A stretch of DNA of 64,000 nt, from contig CBFFRP010000016.1 in NCBI GenBank assembly GCA_965644295.1, positions 89,900-153,899 on the forward strand. Direction: 5' to 3'. This stretch comes from Paraphysomonas bandaiensis (lineage: Eukaryota; Protista; Chrysophyceae). The translations under genes were made by a program, and so were the position numbers. The notes beneath the pieces are model-generated. The model worked only from the letters and a program-made list of their open reading frames with translations, made no database searches and was not told where the DNA came from. Positions 49,199 through 64,000 of the stretch are shown in pieces. How positions within the stretch are numbered: the stretch's first letter is position 1; every line of letters starts with the position of its first letter.

Positions 49199-50898
49199 AT
49201 GTCTGAACCTATACTTGGAGATATGGTGAGCGATAAAGCTATCAGCAAGAGGAAGAAGAGGAAGCTCGAGCAGCTGACTCCCGATCAGCTGGCTGCTTAT
49301 AATTTGGGTGCCTTCCTCACTACATGCTGTAAGGTAAGCTCTTAATAGATGACTGTGATGATTAGAAGATGGCTGAATTCATGTAATGTGACTGTTTATT
49401 TGCAGGATCTGAATCTGGAGGGTGCTGTTGAGGCGTATAAGAAGGCTAAGAGTAACGGTATCTATCCTCCGAAAGATTCCTTCAATCATCTATTGGCTCT
49501 AGCGGCGGGACTTGGAGAGCAGGGATCGGGAAGCTTCCCTGTTAGGGAGCAAGATCCACCGAGTGACATTGAGGCTGCATTCATGGTGTTTGAAGATGCC
49601 AGACGTGCAGGAGCTGCTATTCAAGAAGCTCCCTATAGCGGACTTATTCGCTGCTGCTCTACCCATGGGCGTAAGGAGGATGGCCTGAAATTACTGCGTG
49701 AGATGCAAGGAGCAAATATTACCCCACGAAATCGCACGTACAGTTCTCTTTTATCTGCTTATTGTGCTAGCGGCGAAGAACCTATCAGTGCGCAACTGTT
49801 TGAAGAGATGACGAGTAAATACAATCTCCAGCCACTGGAAAAAGACTATTTGTCAATTCTTCGACTAAGTGTAGATGTCAACAATTCGTCTCGTTTTTAC
49901 CGCACATTACATGGGCTCATGGAGGATATTCTTGTTCCATCGAAAGAGTTGTGGGGTGTTTTGACGGCTTGGTTCTCTCAGGACGACAGGAAGGATAGAT
50001 TTTCTATTCAAGAATGCCCTGTAGATCCGTGCGGCCACATTTCGGCCTGCGAATATACGTTGCGTTCGATTGAGCTGCGGGATAAAGAAAAACGGCTACT
50101 CCTTGGGGAAATAGAGAAAGGTGTGCTAACCGATGAACCCAGCAGAAGGCGGAAGAATGTTGGAGAGAAGTGGGAGGCCTTCAAACGATGGCTAGAAAAT
50201 CAAACAGAACAAAAAACATTTGATGTCATTTTAGATGGAGCCAATATAGGGTATTATCAGCAAAATTTTGCTGAAGCAACAGGGCGCATAGACTACTTTC
50301 AAATTGAGGCAATGGTTCAATTGCTGCGGAGTATGGGAAGGCACCCCATGATTGTGCTCCATTGCCGTCATCTCTTTGCAGATGTCTTGCCTGACCAATG
50401 CAAAGGTATCGTCGACAAATGGAAAGAGGACAAGATATTGTATACAACTCCTGCAGGGTGTAATGATGATACTTTCTGGCTTTACGCCACTGTGTTCCGT
50501 GGATGTGATGTAGTGACTATCGACGAAATGCGTGACCATCATTTCTCCATGCTTAGCCCCAGGTATGGCATGCGTATATAAATGCATCAGTGGCTTGTGA
50601 CTGGTTTGTACGCAGGTGGTTCCTACGATGGAAGGAAAGGCACCAAATCAAGTTCACTTTTGGAAAGCTTACCAACACACTCTCTTCAGGAACACATGGC
50701 CAAAGACTCCGTGAAGTAGAAATAGCTGTACCGCCTCCATATTCTCGCCGAATACAAAAATATGAGGTAACAAGTGGAATAAATAATCAAACTGAGGCCG
50801 CACCTGTTGACGATGTAGAAGCACTAGGCTATTTTGTACCAGCAGAGGGAAGCGAACTCTGGATGTGCATAACACCAAAAAATAAGACAGATAGCTAA
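49199..50898 (+). CDS. PRORP: Protein-only RNase P (PPR plus NYN metallonuclease), 3 exons
   Basis: PPR-like repeats (YSGLIRCC; PRNRTYSSLLSAYC), zinc-site CxxC, DGANIG, NDDTFWLYA, VTIDEMRDHHF and FLRWKERHQ; KRKKRK near the N-terminus. Confidence 0.92.
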
Positions 50899-53190: not shown

Positions 53191-54366
53191 ATTACAGAGA
53201 AAGTTTATAATTACATATCTACAGGTACTATTACAAAGTATTTCGTTTACATACTGAGTTTGTTCGTCCTCCTGTCATAAGTAGCAAGTAGTCGCACATT
53301 GCGTTAATGTAACACTTATTAAGCTACTCAATTTTAATATTTTAAAGTGCTTGCTCAATTATTGTGCTGACTAGTATAGGGGACTAAACTTGTTCAAATT
53401 TAGTGTGGAATAGTACTTTGTAGTTTTGTTGCTTGTCTAGCCATGTTTATACGATCATTATTATACACGATAGGTAGTTGTAAAAACTAATGTAGCCTAA
53501 GTATACATAGCCGCTACATTAAAACACTCACACTTTAGTATAATTTTATGTTTGGCAGTATGCACGTATGCACACCTAGTTCTTTCTGTTTTCGTGCTCT
53601 TACACATTTACTAGAAGCTAGAAGTCATATCATGCACGATTGTATGAACTATTCTTTAATAAAAGCATCATATTATGAAAACTCATTGCTGTACCATCGG
53701 TCAATATATTGCTAAAATTGCCCAAGTATTCTCGAATGCTGATATAGCTATGCATGATAGACAATGCATTGTGCTCTTGAATATATGTTCTATGTGACCT
53801 GAATACAGATCCGAGCCACTTGTTCAAAATTCAGTAAAGTTTATGCCTTCAATTGAAGCATCAGATAGTATGTTAATATAAAGGTAGAAGTATGAAATGT
53901 CCATCAGGTCAGCACGACTCTAGCCCTTGTACCCTAATCAATAGTTTGGAGTCAGCTGTTGTGATCGGAAACAACCACAACAACAAGATTATTCACTTGA
54001 GTGCTGTTACGCTATTTCATGTATTTACTTTCCCGAAGGAGTCCATGACGGCACCACATCCTCTAACTGGTCACTGTATCCTTCCGTGTCCACGATCTGT
54101 GCGTCCGTACCTATGAACACATACATAAACCTACAAGTACCTCTGTTTACAATGTACAGCAGTACATATTATAGTGCAGCGGTACTATTCTACACGTACA
54201 CAGGCACTGGAACAACCAGGAACAGGCAGGAGTAGAGTGACATTAACACATACACAGCACACACAATGACAACATGCTCCCACTCGATAGAAACATATAT
54301 AACAACGAATAACCACACTCACCCTGCATGAGGATACTATGACCCTCTTGTAAGGTAACTTCAACA

Positions 54367-55380
54367 ATGCATGTCTCACTCTATGCACTGCTATGCCTCA
54401 CTGTTGTGTTAATGAGCTCTGATAGCTCACATTACCATACAAGAAAACACTCTCTATCAGGAGCTCCATCGCAAAAACAATGTCCCAATATATCCGAGGA
54501 GATCTATCGAGACACACCAATGATTAGACAGCGGCGGAATGACAGTATTCATTTGGACTTGAAGAATAGATGGTTACATATACCAAAAACTGGTACAAGT
54601 TATGTGTTGACTTTTCTCTCTCTATCTTGTCCAGCATTGCCACATGACTTGCACTTTTCCAGTACAGGATATGGCACTAGTACTGCAGAGCTTATACGGT
54701 CCCACAGTAGTATAATACCGCAGTACTGTTCGCTAAAGCCAGGGGTAGAAGTAGAGGGACATCATCCTCTCAAACTTCACGAGCAACTGGCCCTACTCCG
54801 CGCACCGGATGGAGTATTTCTTGAACGCTACTTCACAATGTTGAGAGACCCAGTCGAGCGTATGGTATCTGGTTTCAACCACAACCACCACGATTGCGAT
54901 TATTGCCGGCCCAATACTACACTGATTGAATATGCGGCAATGCATACTCAGTCGCCACACATTGGTCCTGCTGGATGCATGACCAAGATGCTTCTTGGTG
55001 AAGACTGCGGTCGTCGTTATCCCGCACGAGCGGGTCTCGAAAGAGCTAAGAATATCCTCAAAAAGTTCTTTTTCGTAGGAATAATGGAGCAATGGGAGTT
55101 GTCTATATGTTTGACCCATGCTATATATGGGTTTCGAATAGTCGGTGCACCAATGCAGTCCCAGTTTGTTCACGCTCGACAATCTAATATTCCGTCTGAC
55201 AAGGTAATGAAGCAGATAGCAGAGTTAAAAGAATTCTACAAGGCAGATGCCAATGGAATCCGCCCCGATCACTATGATTGGGTTGATGCAGAGCTATATG
55301 AGTATGGCTTAGAGCTATTTTGGGGAAATGTGGAGCGCTTTGGATTACAGTCATATTCACATATAAATAAACATTGGTGA
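54367..55380 (+). CDS. Golgi-type carbohydrate sulfotransferase
   Basis: N-terminal signal/anchor; 5'-PSB motif LHIPKTGTS; 3'-PB motif MLRDPVERMVSGF; FFFVGIME; D.ELY. Confidence 0.85.
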   Translation: MHVSLYALLCLTVVLMSSDSSHYHTRKHSLSGAPSQKQCPNISEEIYRDTPMIRQRRNDSIHLDLKNRWLHIPKTGTSYVLTFLSLSCPALPHDLHFSSTGYGTSTAELIRSHSSIIPQYCSLKPGVEVEGHHPLKLHEQLALLRAPDGVFLERYFTMLRDPVERMVSGFNHNHHDCDYCRPNTTLIEYAAMHTQSPHIGPAGCMTKMLLGEDCGRRYPARAGLERAKNILKKFFFVGIMEQWELSICLTHAIYGFRIVGAPMQSQFVHARQSNIPSDKVMKQIAELKEFYKADANGIRPDHYDWVDAELYEYGLELFWGNVERFGLQSYSHINKHW

Positions 55381-55738
55381 CCGTAGTATGATGAGTATAT
55401 ATCATTTTTGTTGAGAGGTATTTTGATGACGTTTGTAACATTCTGTGCCAGTTATGCTATAAAGTATTAGTCATAAGCGGAGCACTGAAAACAGCTAGAA
55501 AATATTAAGCTAGATATGGTTCACACTGAATGATCTATTTGCTCTACTTATTTATCACATATTGGCTCGCACTCCTGTGGGGGTCATCCAATGTCACCCA
55601 TAAAGAACATTATTCATGGACTTCAAAGTCTACATGGTGGTGTAACATATACACATTTACTATAGCGCCTAAATAATAAAAAACAAACCATTCGACAACA
55701 ACGAAAGGTTCTATGATATTATTTACAAAATACCACAC

Positions 55739-56827
55739 TTATTTTCGCACATGTTGTCTACTCCATATTTGAACCACAACAGGCTGTCTTACTAAACGTC
55801 CACAGAATTCAAACACTGTATTTGGAGGGTGTGTTGTTTCTACTTCCCACTTATATTTACCACACATACAGACACACTTGTCATTCATTGTATCACAGTG
55901 GCAGTTTATTATTTCAGAAGCTCTCTTTAAAAAATTCTCGTGTGCACATCGTGCAGGATTGAGAAATATCATTCGTGTTGGTTTCATTTCAAGGGCGGAG
56001 TGGCATACGAATCGCAGAGGATAGTCACGATCGATGTCATTCGTAGAAGCCCCTTGTGCAGAAAAACCACCCGCCCCTCCACCGCTCGTAAATGGGGGAT
56101 TTGCGACTACAACAACCTCTTTTTGTTCATGGTTTGGAATATGTGAGAGAAGCTCGTCACGGTTTGTACTGAGATAGTCGCTGACACGGATATGACATTT
56201 GTGAGGGAACTCACGTGCAGCATGTTCTGCAGCTTTCGATGCTTCTATAACATCTACATCATTTCCCACTACATAACAAGAATCTGTGCATTTGGCAAGG
56301 GCCACTACAACACGCCCATCTCCACATGACGGCTCAACGAATATGGTATCCTCTGAGTACTGTGATTTCGCTAGACCAACGATATATTCAACATTACTAC
56401 TACTCGAAAAATATTGCTGCAATTCCCGAGGACCAGACTCCATTTGTTTACGTTTAACAATTTTTTCTTTTATTAATCTATACTGCTCTTCATCGCAGAA
56501 CAGATCCATGAGGTAATGTGCATGCAGAGACACCTGAGACAGCCACTCATTCAACACACCAACACTTTTCTTATAGTGAGGCTTCCATCCATCACCATCC
56601 ACACACCATGAGCACTCATCTTTCATTAGATTCTTAACGCGTCCAGTCGGAAATTTTAAAGTGCTTGTGGAGTCCCTGTGAGAGACCTCTCTGGACAACC
56701 ATAACAAGTCATGATAAGACCGATGAAGCAATGAACCTTCAGGGGAACGAAGAAGGAAGTACTTAAAGGTATGGTCTCCTTCACATGTCACATGTAAGCC
56801 GAATACTGAAATGGAAGAGTTGGACAT
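55739..56827 (-). CDS. Class I SAM-dependent amino-methyltransferase-like protein with a PX-like N-terminus
   Basis: Motif I FVEPSCGDG and motif IV VVANPPF; N-terminal RSYHDLLWL...FP...LNEWL resembles a PX domain. Confidence 0.7.
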   Translation of the reverse strand: MSNSSISVFGLHVTCEGDHTFKYFLLRSPEGSLLHRSYHDLLWLSREVSHRDSTSTLKFPTGRVKNLMKDECSWCVDGDGWKPHYKKSVGVLNEWLSQVSLHAHYLMDLFCDEEQYRLIKEKIVKRKQMESGPRELQQYFSSSSNVEYIVGLAKSQYSEDTIFVEPSCGDGRVVVALAKCTDSCYVVGNDVDVIEASKAAEHAAREFPHKCHIRVSDYLSTNRDELLSHIPNHEQKEVVVVANPPFTSGGGAGGFSAQGASTNDIDRDYPLRFVCHSALEMKPTRMIFLNPARCAHENFLKRASEIINCHCDTMNDKCVCMCGKYKWEVETTHPPNTVFEFCGRLVRQPVVVQIWSRQHVRK

Positions 56828-57424
56828 GACCTGACCAGAACTATGTGTGGAATATGTATGTATGTATGTCCCTTCCGTTCACTTCTCTGATGTACAGCAG
56901 TGTATGTACAGTACGTAAAAATAGAAATATCTCAAAGAGAATACGCACCGTTTAATAAAATGTGTTGGAATTCGTATCTCTTTGTACAATCGGATAGAGA
57001 GAGTATGCTGTATGCGGGTATGTGACGGCATGCCGCATGGATAGGCTAGAAAGAGATCAGACAAACAGATTTCTTGAACATTTTAGTTTTTACATCGCGA
57101 AATAGACAAAATATCAAAAAAATCCTATTGTAAAAAATTTCTACAACAAAATTGACCAAATTATTGTACTTCATTATCCTATACTATAAAATATATCAAA
57201 GTACTATTTACAAAATTTCACCCGCTAAAATAAAAAAAAGCAATAAATAAAAAAATTCAAAGAAATATTTTGGTCAAGCATTTCAGACCGGTCACATTGA
57301 CCGATCAATCCACACACAAGCACATTGCAACAATACAACGACAACAACAACTTCAGATCATGAATTCACCAAACTCAGACAATTCTAATAAAAGATAGCA
57401 ATCTACATGTGTGTGATCAATGTC

Positions 57425-57504
57425 CCCTCTATGATTATATATATTATAAATGGGTAATTTACGGCTGAATGTTTCATGTCGATACTCCTGTGTCTATGAG
57501 AGGG
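57425..57504 (+). ncRNA. SNORD16: Box C/D snoRNA, SNORD16 (U16)/snR87-like; first of 23 tandem copies (last at about 63185-63264)
   Basis: Terminal stem CCCTC/GAGGG. Box C ATGATTA at 57431, D' CTGA at 57465, C' ATGTCGA at 57476, box D ATGA at 57496. The 13-nt guide TGGGTAATTTACG is complementary to conserved 18S CGUAAAUUACCCA, and the +5 rule points to the A equivalent to yeast Am436 / human Am484. Confidence 0.88.
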
Positions 57505-57579
57505 TGCAATCCTTGTATGTATTTATATGCGCGCAATTGTCTGTGAGGATACCGATTTTAACGTTTGTGTGTCATGTAG

Positions 57580-57634
57580 GTTTTACCATCAATGTGTTGG
57601 GAGTCAGTTCGATCTTGACTAGTTAACGCGGAAG
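57580..57634 (+). other. Non-coding host-gene exon (55 nt), repeated once per unit; intron example 57635-57841
   Basis: Flanked by TAG| and |GTAACA; TGA, TAG and TAA stops occupy frames 1, 2 and 3. Confidence 0.75.
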
Positions 57635-60600
57635 GTAACATATATATGACACAGTCCCGAATTGTATGCTGTGTGTGATCAATGTCCCCTCTATGATTAT
57701 ATATATTATAAATGGGTAATTTACGGCTGAATGTTTCATGTCGATACTCCTGTGTCTATGAGAGGGTGCAATCCTTGTATGTATTTATATGCGCGCAATT
57801 GTCTGTGAGGATACCGATTTTAACGTTTGTGTGTCATGTAGGTTTTACCATCAATGTGTTGGGAGTCAGTTCGATCTTGACTAGTTAACGCGGAAGGTAA
57901 CATATATATGACACAGTCCCGAATTGTATGCTGTGTGTGATCAATGTCCCCTCTATGATTATATATATTATAAATGGGTAATTTACGGCTGAATGTTTCA
58001 TGTCGATACTCCTGTGTCTATGAGAGGGTGCAATCCTTGTATGTATTTATATGCGCGCAATTGTATGTGAGGATACCGATTTTAACGTTTGTGTGTCATG
58101 TAGGTTTTACCATCAATGTGTTGGGAGTCAGTTCGATCTTGACTAGTTAACCGGAAGGTAACATATATATGACACAGTCCCGAATTGTATGCTGTGTGTG
58201 ATCAATGTCCCCTCTATGATTATATATATTATAAATGGGTAATTTACGGCTGAATGTTTCATGTCGATACTCCTGTGTCTATGAGAGGGTGCAATCCTTG
58301 TATGTATTTATATGCGCGCAATTGTCTGTGAAGATACCGATTTTAACGTTTGTGTGTCATGTAGGTTTTACCATCAATGTGTTGGGAGTCAGTTCGATCT
58401 TGACTAGTTAACGCGGAAGGTAACATATATATGACACAGTCCCGAATTGTATGCTGTGTGTGATCAATGTCCCCTCTATGATTATATATATTATAAATGG
58501 GTAATTTACGGCTGAATGTTTCATGTCGATACTCCTGTGTCTATGAGAGGGTGCAATCCTTGTATGTATTTATATGCGCGCAATTGTCTGTGAGGATACC
58601 GATTTTAACGTTTGTGTGTCATGTAGGTTTTACCATCAATGTGTTGGGAGTCAGTTCGATCTTGACTAGTTAACGCGGAAGGTAACATATATATGACACA
58701 GTCCCGAATTGTATGCTGTGTGTGATCAATGTCCCCTCTATGATTATATATATTATAAATGGGTAATTTACGGCTGAATGTTTCATGTCGATACTCCTGT
58801 GTCTATGAGAGGGTGCAATCCTTGTATGTATTTATATGCGCGCAATTGTCTGTGAGGATACCGATTTTAACGTTTGTGTGTCATGTAGGTTTTACCATCA
58901 ATGTGTTGGGAGTCAGTTCGATCTTGACTAGTTAACGCGGAAGGTAACATATATATGACACAGTCCCGAATTGTATGCTGTGTGTGATCAATGTCCCCTC
59001 TATGATTATATATATTATAAATGGGTAATTTACGGCTGAATGTTTCATGTCGATACTCCTGTGTCTATGAGAGGGTGCAATCCTTGTATGTATTTATATG
59101 CGCGCAATTGTATGTGAGGATACCGATTTTAACGTTTGTGTGTCATGTAGGTTTTACCATCAATGTGTTGGGAGTCAGTTCGATCTTGACTAGTTAACGC
59201 GGAAGGTAACATATATATGACACAGTCCCGAATTGTATGCTGTGTGTGATCAATGTCCCCTCTATGATTATATATATTATAAATGGGTAATTTACGGCTG
59301 AATGTTTCATGTCGATAGTCCTGTGTCTATGAGAGGGTGCAATCCTTGTATGTATTTATATGCGCGCAATTGTATGTGAGGATACCGATTTTAACGTTTG
59401 TGTGTCATGTAGGTTTTACCATCAATGTGTTGGGAGTCAGTTCGATCTTGACTAGTTAACGCGGAAGGTAACATATATATGACACAGTCCCGAATTGTAT
59501 GCTGTGTGTGATCAATGTCCCCTCTATGATTATATATATTATAAATGGGTAATTTACGGCTGAATGTTTCATGTCGATACTCCTGTGTCTATGAGAGGGT
59601 GCAATCCTTGTATGTATTTATATGCGCGCAATTGTATGTGAGGATACCGATTTTAACGTTTGTGTGTCATGTAGGTTTTACCATCAATGTGTTGGGAGTC
59701 AGTTCGATCTTGACTAGTTAACGCGGAAGGTAACATATATATGACACAGTCCCGAATTGTATGCTGTGTGTGATCAATGTCCCCTCTATGATTATATATA
59801 TTATAAATGGGTAATTTACGGCTGAATGTTTCATGTCGATAGTCCTGTGTCTATGAGAGGGTGCAATCCTTGTATGTATTTATATGCGCGCAATTGCCTG
59901 TGAGGATACCGATTTTAACGTTTGTGTGTCATGTAGGTTTTACCATCAATGTGTTGGGAGTCAGTTCGATCTTGACTAGTTAACGCGGAAGGTAACATAT
60001 ATATGACACAGTCCCGAATTGTATGCTGTGTGTGATCAATGTCCCCTCTATGATTATATATATTATAAATGGGTAATTTACGGCTGAATGTTTCATGTCG
60101 ATACTCCTGTGTCTATGAGAGGGTGCAATCCTTGTATGTATTTATATGCGCGCAATTGTATGTGAGGATACCGATTTTAACGTTTGTGTGTCATGTAGGT
60201 TTTACCATCAATGTGTTGGGAGTCAGTTCGATCTTGACTAGTTAACGCGGAAGGTAACATATATATGACACAGTCCCGAATTGTATGCTGTGTGTGATCA
60301 ATGTCCCCTCTATGATTATATATATTATAAATGGGTAATTTACGGCTGAATGTTTCATGTCGATACTCCTGTGTCTATGAGAGGGTGCAATCCTTGTATG
60401 TATTTATATGCGCGCAATTGTCTGTGAGGATACCGATTTTAACGTTTGTGTGTCATGTAGGTTTTACCATCAATGTGTTGGGAGTCAGTTCGATCTTGAC
60501 TAGTTAACGCGGAAGGTAACATATATATGACACAGTCCCGAATTGTATGCTGTGTGTGATCAATGTCCCCTCTATGATTATATATATTATAAATGGGTAA

Positions 60601-63404
60601 TTTACGGCTGAATGTTTCATGTCGATACTCCTGTGTCTATGAGAGGGTGCAATCCTTGTATGTATTTATATGCGCGCAATTGTATGTGAGGATACCGATT
60701 TTAACGTTTGTGTGTCATGTAGGTTTTACCATCAATGTGTTGGGAGTCAGTTCGATCTTGACTAGTTAACGCGGAAGGTAACATATATATGACACAGTCC
60801 CGAATTGTATGCTGTGTGTGATCAATGTCCCCTCTATGATTATATATATTATAAATGGGTAATTTACGGCTGAATGTTTCATGTCGATACTCCTGTGTCT
60901 ATGAGAGGGTGCAATCCTTGTATGTATTTATATGCGCGCAATTGTATGTGAGGATACCGATTTTAACGTTTGTGTGTCATGTAGGTTTTACCATCAATGT
61001 GTTGGGAGTCAGTTCGATCTTGACTAGTTAACCGGAAGGTAACATATATATGACACAGTCCCGAATTGTATGCTGTGTGTGATCAATGTCCCCTCTATGA
61101 TTATATATATTATAAATGGGTAATTTACGGCTGAATGTTTCATGTCGATACTCCTGTGTCTATGAGAGGGTGCAATCCTTGTATGTATTTATATGCGCGC
61201 AATTGTATGTGAGGATACCGATTTTAATGTTTGTGTGTCATGTAGGTTTTACCATCAATGTGTTGGGAGTCAGTTCGATCTTGACTAGTTAACGCGGAAG
61301 GTAACATATATATGACACAGTCCCGAATTGTATGCTGTGTGTGATCAATGTCCCCTCTATGATTATATATATTATAAATGGGTAATTTACGGCTGAATGT
61401 TTCATGTCGATACTCCTGTGTCTATGAGAGGGTGTAATCCTTGTATGTATTTATATGCGCGCAATTGTATGTGAGGATACCGATTTTAACGTTTGTGTGT
61501 CATGTAGGTTTTACCATCAATGTGTTGGGAGTCAGTTCGATCTTGACTAGTTAACGCGGAAGGTAACATATATATGACACAGTCCCGAATTGTATGCTGT
61601 GTGTGATCAATGTCCCCTCTATGATTATATATATTATAAATGGGTAATTTACGGCTGAATGTTTCATGTCGATACTCCTGTGTCTATGAGAGGGTGTAAT
61701 CCTTGTATGTATTTATATGCGCGCAATTGTATGTGAGGATACCGATTTTAACGTTTGTGTGTCATGTAGGTTTTACCATCAATGTGTTGGGAGTCAGTTC
61801 GATCTTGACTAGTTAACCGGAAGGTAACATATATATGACACAGTCCCGAATTGTATGCTGTGTGTGATCAATGTCCCCTCTATGATTATATATATTATAA
61901 ATGGGTAATTTACGGCTGAATGTTTCATGTCGATACTCCTGTGTCTATGAGAGGGTGCAATCCTTGTATGAATTTATATGCGCGCAATTGTCTGTGAGGA
62001 TACCGATTTTAACGTTTGTGTGTCGTGTAGGTTTTACCATCAATGTGTTGGGAGTCAGTTCGATCTTGACTAGTTAACGCGGAAGGTAACATATATATGA
62101 CACAGTCCCGAATTGTATGCTGTGTGTGATCAATGTCCCCTCTATGATTATATATATTATAAATGGGTAATTTACGGCTGAATGTTTCATGTCGATACTC
62201 CTGTGTCTATGAGAGGGTGCAATCCTTGTATGTATTTATATGCGCGCAATTGTATGTGAGGATACCGATTTTAACGTTTGTGTGTCATGTAGGTTTTACC
62301 ATCAATGTGTTGGGAGTCAGTTCGATCTTGACTAGTTAACGCGGAAGGTAACATATATATGACACAGTCCCGAATTGTATGCTGTGTGTGATCAATGTCC
62401 CCTCTATGATTATATATATTATAAATGGGTAATTTACGGCTGAATGTTTCATGTCGATACTCCTGTGTCTATGAGAGGGTGCAATCCTTGTATGTATTTA
62501 TATGCGCGCAATTGTATGTGAGGATACCGATTTTAACGTTTGTGTGTCATGTAGGTTTTACCATCAATGTGTTGGGAGTCAGTTCGATCTTGACTAGTTA
62601 ACCGGAAGGTAACATATATATGACACAGTCCCGAATTGTATGCTGTGTGTGATCAATGTCCCCTCTATGATTATATATATTATAAATGGGTAATTTACGG
62701 CTGAATGTTTCATGTCGATACTCCTGTGTCTATGAGAGGGTGCAATCCTTGTATGAATTTATATGCGCGCAATTGTCTGTGAGGATACCGATTTTAACGT
62801 TTGTGTGTCGTGTAGGTTTTACCATCAATGTGTTGGGAGTCAGTTCGATCTTGACTAGTTAACGCGGAAGGTAACATATATATGACACAGTCCCGAATTG
62901 TATGCTGTGTGTGATCAATGTCCCCTCTATGATTATATATATTATAAATGGGTAATTTACGGCTGAATGTTTCATGTCGATACTCCTGTGTCTATGAGAG
63001 GGTGTAATCCTTGTATGTATTTATATGCGCGCAATTGTATGTGAGGATACCGATTTTAACGTTTGTGTGTCATGTAGGTTTTACCATCAATGTGTTGGGA
63101 GTCAGTTCGATCTTGACTAGTTAACGCGGAAGGTAACATATATATGACACAGTCCCGAATTGTATGCTGTGTGTGATCAATGTCCCCTCTATGATTATAT
63201 ATATTATAAATGGGTAATTTACGGCTGAATGTTTCATGTCGATACTCCTGTGTCTATGAGAGGGTGCAATCCTTGTATGTATTTATATGCGCGCAATTGT
63301 CTGTGAGGATACCGATTTTAACGTTTGTGTGTCATGTAGGTTTTACCATCAATGTGTTACATCTCGTGTTACACCCACTTCGATTGTACACATATACACA
63401 CGTC

Positions 63405-63563
63405 GGCGTCCTGTTTAGAGTCGCACCTATAGCGAATCAATGCTATTAGCGTGTGCTGAAGGGCGCCAATATACCTGCACAGGATGAACCCCTGCGGTGT
63501 GGCTGATGTTATTGCACTTTAGATAGCCGCAGCCATGCCATATGAAGTCGCAGTGGAACATAT
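63405..63563 (+). ncRNA. SNORA3: Box H/ACA snoRNA, SNORA3 (ACA3)/snR11-like, copy 1
   Basis: Hairpin GGCGTCC...GGGCGCC with pocket strands TTAGAGTC and GCT, which pair either side of the UU in LSU rRNA GAGC-UU-GACUCUAG (yeast Psi2416 site). An H-like AATATA/ATATAC lies 13-14 nt from the pocket; a second hairpin CTGCGG/TCGCAG is followed by ACA-TAT. Confidence 0.72.
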
Positions 63564-63754
63564 TTATTACCTCACACCATACAACAACACATCCTACACA
63601 ATTTCATTACGTGGATGACAACTATTCTTACTATTGTATTGGTAGATATGCTGATGGGTGGGATGTGTTACTCATACGGCTCCATTATTGGATATGGCAA
63701 GGTAAGCATATTCTTGTGTTACACCCACTTCGATTGTACACATATACACACGTC

Positions 63755-63913
63755 GGCGTCCTGTTTAGAGTCGCACCTATAGCGAATCAATGCTATTAGC
63801 GTGTGCTGAAGGGCGCCAATATACCTGCACAGGATGAACCCCTGCGGTGTGGCTGATGTTATTGCACTTTAGATAGCCGCAGCCATGCCATATGAAGTCG
63901 CAGTGGAACATAT
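63755..63913 (+). ncRNA. SNORA3: Box H/ACA snoRNA, SNORA3/snR11-like, copy 2
   Basis: Identical to copy 1 and located inside the complete intron 63702-63995. Confidence 0.72.
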
Positions 63914-64000
63914 TTATTACCTCACACCATACAACAACACATCCTACACAATTTCATTACATGGATGACAACTATTCTTACTATTGTGTTGGTAGATATG

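Follow-up and report, generated by a model that had tools for sequence, protein, structure and literature searches.

Tandem arrays that repeat a module of one exon and one intron bearing a small nucleolar RNA (snoRNA) are known mainly from imprinted loci of mammals, where the guides have no known target. Tandemly repeated snoRNA genes that guide ribosomal RNA (rRNA) modification occur in Euglena and trypanosomatids, where they form unspliced polycistrons. Here we analyze a tandem array of 262-bp units, each with a box C/D snoRNA, at positions 57408-63358 of a 64,000-nucleotide stretch of the Paraphysomonas bandaiensis genome (the window; assembly GCA_965644295.1, contig CBFFRP010000016.1, positions 89,900 to 153,899, forward strand). 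With a probability of roughly 0.8, we read this array as one long non-coding spliced host gene, with one C/D snoRNA per intron, that arose by tandem amplification of a single module.

The array resembles the Euglena and trypanosomatid genes in being a head-to-tail repeat of an rRNA guide read as a long precursor, and differs from those unspliced polycistrons in that its units are separated by spliced mini-exons. The initial annotation held that an array of a canonical rRNA guide would be unusual in a protist; given the euglenozoan genes, that claim of rarity was too strong, though those genes are unspliced, and in the open-access literature we found no description of this combination for stramenopiles. 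The mammalian tandem snoRNA loci named in PMC11028025, citing Cavaille et al. 2001, include SNORD116 and SNORD115 of the Prader-Willi/Angelman locus, SNORD113/114 and rat Bsr with RBII-36. Like SNORD116, SNORD115 and Bsr, the array consists of tandem exon-intron units, in tens of near-identical copies, of a non-coding spliced host with one C/D snoRNA in each intron. Those loci, however, are imprinted, tissue-specific, mammalian and mostly made of orphan guides, whereas this array carries a conserved rRNA guide, belongs to a unicellular marine protist and has a much smaller unit (262 bp). The mammalian genes UHG and GAS5 and the UHG-like clusters of Neurospora share with it short non-coding exons, one rRNA-guide snoRNA per intron and a set distance to the 3' splice site, a distance that matters for processing (PMC2780460); their successive introns, in contrast, carry different snoRNAs, with no tandem repeat of one module.

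The array comprises 22 full units and one partial unit, all on the plus strand, which together contain 23 copies of the snoRNA and, counting complete ones only, 22 exons of 55 nt and 22 introns of 207 nt. As in a host gene of the SNORD116/Bsr type, each repeated unit consists of an exon and a snoRNA-bearing intron. With units numbered so that column 1 is position 57410, unit 1 illustrates the layout. Its 80-nt snoRNA (copy 1, 57425-57504) recurs every 262 or 261 bp, for example as copy 2 at 57687-57766, and is closed by a 5-bp terminal stem, CCCTC/GAGGG (57425-57429 and 57500-57504). Within it lie box C, ATGATTA (57431-57437), with U instead of G at position 6; the 14-nt D' guide UGGGUAAUUUACGG (57451-57464), followed by box D', CTGA (guide and box together, 57451-57468); and the 12-nt D guide ACUCCUGUGUCU, followed by box D, ATGA (together 57484-57499, with box D at 57496-57499). 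A weak C' box stands between D' and the D guide in each unit. Downstream, the sequence TTTTAAC (57556-57562), about 57 nt after the snoRNA and about 18 nt before the acceptor, resembles a branch site and presumably serves as one. The acceptor AG (57578-57579), 80 nt after box D, opens the 55-nt non-coding exon (57580-57634, recurring in each unit, for example at 57842-57896), and the donor AAG/GTAACA (57635) is followed by 37 nt of intron up to the unit boundary.

Every exon has a stop codon in all three frames and concatenated exons are also closed, leaving the host RNA without coding potential. The initial annotation had ascribed a donor, a C/D cassette with a terminal stem, a TTAAC, an acceptor and a closed exon to every unit, and all of these elements are present; the description fails only at the two ends. 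Inside the array no donor precedes copy 1, which leaves 22 of the 23 snoRNA copies in complete introns, and no donor-like GTAA motif was seen in the approximately 130 bp directly upstream. In the last, partial unit (63170-63358), snoRNA copy 23 is intact and an acceptor follows, but the exon breaks off after its first 19 nt, at 63358, where a different, 350-bp repeat starts.

If the units are exon-intron modules, neighboring exons should be joined in RNA. We mapped three RNA runs from three studies and one DNA run, as assembled contigs, on positions 54300-58200. All three RNA runs yield an 85-nt contig made of the 55-nt exon and 30 nt of the next exon, the length produced by a k=31 assembler on a 55-nt cycle. 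Each transcript carries the exon about 22 times, and contig depth measures neither copy number nor expression. The depth of this contig is 522.7 in run X8 (neighboring genes, 118.9), 46.5 in X12 (approximately 6-9), where the contig returns on itself after 55 nt, and 17.6 in X15, a poly(A) metatranscriptome by its record (approximately 3-8), where the contig is the same and cyclic. In X8 the contig lies on 57840-57894 and 58102-58131. Shifted by two ambiguous letters, its joint from 57894 to 58102 skips 57897-58103, which is exactly the predicted 207-nt GT..AG intron, here with snoRNA copy 3, and yields the predicted junction GGAAG/GTTTTAC. The GT..AG ends read on the plus strand. The intron and the snoRNA are free of RNA contigs in X8, X12 and X15, though all three runs cover both neighboring genes, and the exon is the sole part of the unit found in RNA contigs. 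A 24-letter word across the exon-exon junction is absent from the assembly, and the DNA run, X6, contains whole units without that joint. Neighboring mini-exons are thus spliced together on the plus strand, and the junction foreseen by the initial annotation occurs in all three RNA runs.

Within the intron, 51 nt separate the donor from the snoRNA, which is followed by about 57 nt up to the branch-like site and 75 nt up to the acceptor. Work by Hirose and Steitz from 2001 reportedly found that about 70-80 nt to the acceptor and about 50 nt to the branch point favor splicing-dependent assembly of C/D small nucleolar ribonucleoproteins (snoRNPs), and because the distances here fit that rule, we infer that the snoRNAs are released from excised introns. 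The alternative that survives best is a polycistronic precursor from which endo- and exonucleases free the snoRNAs mainly without splicing, as in plants and euglenozoans, with splicing a side reaction on leftover RNA. Copy 1 lends it some weight, since the lack of an upstream donor means that at least one copy is not releasable from a complete intron. Against this, the three RNA data sets show the unit in its spliced form alone, the snoRNA sits at the canonical distance from branch site and acceptor, and homologues elsewhere, described below, are single intronic copies. We consider release without splicing unlikely, if still the chief competitor of a spliced host gene.

To place the snoRNA, we located the organism's own 18S genes by a pattern search of the genome followed by Rfam on the fetched loci. 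The target word CGTAAATTACCCAAT occurs seven times in the genome, and the three places examined (on contigs C68, C196 and C551) are all in 18S ribosomal DNA (rDNA), which confirms that the host 18S holds the predicted target. The D' guide forms 13 consecutive Watson-Crick pairs with CGUAAAUUACCCA at 18S 426-438, and A429 is the partner of its fifth position; a trial of 20,000 shuffled guides produced none as good. The D guide pairs with 18S through its positions 2-10 (eight Watson-Crick pairs and one G-U), with the fifth position on A447, 18 nt downstream of A429. Alone it is weak: 5% of shuffled guides match it at some place in 18S, and 0.7% do so no more than 40 nt away from the first target. 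Both guides therefore adjoin box D' or D, pair over at least 9 bp and place the target at the fifth pair, and the boxes AUGAUUA and AUGA can fold into a kink-turn, with the terminal stem CCCUC/GAGGG closing the RNA. The complement of the D guide, searched across the whole genome with two mismatches, gave no more matches than a reversed control. Minimum-free-energy folding of the snoRNA alone was uninformative (z -0.83), as expected for C/D RNAs.

The assembly has the rDNA in fragmentary form (C196:104298-105966, C516:511-1052, C551). On C196 an 18S is complete, at 1669 nt, the next 8 kb downstream contain neither 5.8S nor large-subunit (LSU) rRNA, and a word from the sarcin-ricin loop finds one LSU fragment only in the assembly.

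The site and guide of snR87/U16 are, to our knowledge, universally conserved. Judged by shared sequence context and position, A429 appears to be the site of yeast Am436 and human Am484, as the initial annotation had proposed in matching the guide to the 18S site of U16/snR87. Yeast Am436 (snR87) equals human Am484 (U16), Arabidopsis Am438 (AtU16) and Dictyostelium Am432 (CD8) (PMC8817022, table 1); A447 is not among the methylated sites tabled there for yeast, human or Arabidopsis, nor in the plant, human and yeast columns of a second table. By sequence family the match is looser. At gathering thresholds, Rfam finds no family in the whole window; the best permissive match is plasmodium_snoR24, over its full length, at 33.8 bits and E 0.012 against a gathering score of 55, and the alignment has the guide and the D' box in common with the array snoRNA. 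U54, which bears the same UGAUU/AUGA box variant, also matches at permissive thresholds. The snoRNA thus falls outside the U16/snR87 sequence family as drawn by the Rfam covariance model, while guide complementarity, the snoR24 guide and the site table place it in the U16/snR87 functional family. U16, snR87, AtU16, CD8 and snoR24 share its target nucleotide and essentially its guide, and Dictyostelium CD8 likewise carries two guides, the second of them directed at small-subunit rRNA a little farther downstream; the array snoRNA differs in its non-canonical but compensating boxes (AUGAUUA/AUGA) and in A447 as the second site. We predict that it directs methylation of A429 and probably of A447.

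Conservation elsewhere bears on both guides. An exact-pattern scan of metagenome contigs for the guide plus D' returned 38 contigs with one match each. About two dozen look like C/D snoRNAs, ten of which were examined by box and stem; the remaining matches look like chance, eight of them being one repeated sequence without C/D boxes. Four unrelated contigs have both guides in common with the window snoRNA (L026 5716-5815; L036 2113-2212, minus strand; L046 172-271; L037 1238-1337), and the D guide core CCUGUGUC is conserved in all four, which raises the D guide from marginal to probably functional. The terminal stems of the homologues differ in sequence and keep their complementarity. In seven other homologues, position 6 of box C and position 1 of box D are G-C, where the window, L037 and L026 have U-A. 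These two positions are expected to face each other in the kink-turn, and the departure of the boxes from consensus is compensatory. In L026 the snoRNA is alone in an intron of about 180 nt, and the intron that houses it in L036 and L046 comes directly after the stop codon of an open reading frame resembling a ribosomal-protein gene. Since the homologues are lone intronic copies, we take the ancestral state to be a single intronic copy and the array to be a lineage-specific amplification. These single-copy, covarying homologues uphold the C/D identity of the cassette, and together with the splicing they rule out a satellite that resembles a snoRNA by chance.

Taken together, these observations point to a model in which an RNA polymerase II-type transcript would run from left to right on the plus strand and the spliceosome joins the identical 55-nt mini-exons, the step seen in the RNA data. 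Each excised 207-nt intron would be debranched and trimmed to the 80-nt snoRNA protected as a snoRNP. Going by pairing and conservation, the D' guide would then direct fibrillarin to A429 of 18S, and the D guide would lead to methylation of A447 or, failing that, supply accessory pairing there. Up to 22 or 23 snoRNAs would come from each transcript, giving a higher dose per transcription event, and the spliced host RNA would be a disposable by-product.

In the organism's own genome, the guide plus D' word occurs in these 23 copies only, and the array is the sole intact source of the A429 guide in the assembly. Alternatively, the array might be a young satellite, derived from a snoRNA-bearing intron and both transcribed and spliced, whose copies add nothing: a neutral expansion rather than a dosage amplification. 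The units are so alike, at about 99% identity, that purifying selection is unreadable from them, and a relic locus elsewhere in the genome (below) shows that units can decay. But the assembly has no other intact gene for this universally conserved guide, and all 23 copies retain both guides and all boxes. A neutral satellite is, in our view, very unlikely, and we favor an amplified host gene.

The extent of the array is well defined. Tandem Repeats Finder gives it as a single array (57408-63358, period 262, 22.7 copies, 99% matches, score 11720), and the 23 occurrences of a 14-nt anchor word lie 262 or 261 bp apart. Aligning the 23 units, we found nine variable columns, of which one is inside the snoRNA, at D guide position 11, outside the core paired with 18S. 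The non-adjacent units 17 and 20 have three variants in common, the pattern that unequal exchange would leave in a real array; the units are nearly identical because they were amplified recently or homogenized by unequal exchange. Least probable of the alternatives, and scarcely credible, is that the assembler expanded a short locus close to a contig end and so gave a false copy number: the array does stop 640 bp before the end of its contig and contig depth is no copy number, but the independent DNA sample X6 has summed contig depths of approximately 300-2400 on the units against 25-28 on the single-copy flank, variants are shared between non-adjacent units, and non-array sequence anchors both ends. 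The same depth and variants speak against only one or two copies, which the initial annotation had named as a ground for doubt, and its 23-copy, 262-bp tandem array stands, as 22 full units and one partial. Its reading of the array as an amplified snoRNA-bearing exon-intron module is likewise supported, as none of the three refuting tests that could be run went against it.

Several points weigh against a single long host gene that yields functional guides. The RNA-run contigs give no transcript ends, strand or number of exons per molecule, the repeat collapsing to a 55-nt cycle, and a back-spliced circle of one exon would yield the same junction word. Two of the three RNA runs, X8 and X12, are RNA only by the tool's guess, though their coverage pattern fits RNA. 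No RNA contig of the three runs lies on the 460-bp upstream flank, which the DNA run X6 covers, and none includes a 5' leader. The stable 80-nt RNA and the methyl groups are predictions from sequence, the Rfam scores stay under the gathering threshold, and, with LSU rRNA only fragmentary in the assembly, the scan for D guide targets covers 18S.

Upstream of the array, the flank at 56947-57407 (plus strand) is the likely promoter region, shared with a divergent neighboring gene on the minus strand (55739-56827). That gene converges with another at 54367-55380 on the plus strand, and a single 2.6-kb RNA contig of run X8 (window 54306-56946) spans the two with no gap, which suggests that their 3' ends overlap. 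Searched against Pfam, the proteins of these two genes gave no match. Further upstream, an intron-free open reading frame of 410 amino acids on the plus strand (49349-50581), with PPR repeats and a PRORP domain, is a gene for a protein-only RNase P.

The right border of the C/D array adjoins a second array, with a 350-bp unit, which occupies 63359-64000 on the plus strand and runs into the end of the contig, here C16. Apart from these, the unit is confined to the extreme end of contig C207, where about 27 units lie on the opposite strand (C207:60802-70281; loci L021 and L022), followed by an AT-rich stretch and then another gene. The 350-bp unit has donor-like GGCAAG/GTAAGC and acceptor-like TTGGTAG/ sites, and Rfam gave it chance-level matches only (best E 1.7). 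C16 and C207 probably join at the 350-bp array, which would place the C/D array at the start of a composite locus exceeding 16 kb. The 350-bp array is probably a continuation of the same host gene or transcription unit, with putative splicing.

Two isolated 262-bp units, 91% identical to those of the array, lie at C309:7634-9758 (L013 1635-3759). The guide is mutated in one and the D' box in the other, and they are split by an insertion, possibly a small transposon, in which a 110-nt palindrome stands between 172-nt direct repeats. The flank before the first unit is 80% identical to the upstream flank of the array. A transposon origin of the 262-bp unit, considered for these dispersed copies, is out because they carry that flank with them, which points to a paralogous locus and not to transposition. 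We read C309, from its sequence, as such a locus in decay.

Beyond the single host gene, the locus may be one piece of a genome-wide system in a free-living stramenopile, in which housekeeping snoRNA genes are kept as rDNA-like arrays of spliced modules. The 262-bp and 350-bp arrays (the latter with at least 29 units) would then form one composite host gene of more than 16 kb, with dozens of copies of two guide RNAs per transcript, copy number acting as dosage control and unequal exchange keeping the units identical. We offer this extension tentatively, as a proposal with slightly less than an even chance of being right.

Here a unicellular marine eukaryote has an architecture of the SNORD116 type that bears a universally conserved guide for rRNA methylation, and public RNA data reveal its splicing. 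In practical terms, satellites in protist genomes should be screened for snoRNAs before they are masked. The array is also a small, tractable system in which to study the ordered splicing of repeated mini-exons, the homogenization of arrays and the relation of copy number to the level of rRNA modification. Such an architecture can arise independently, as an ordinary means of raising snoRNA output.

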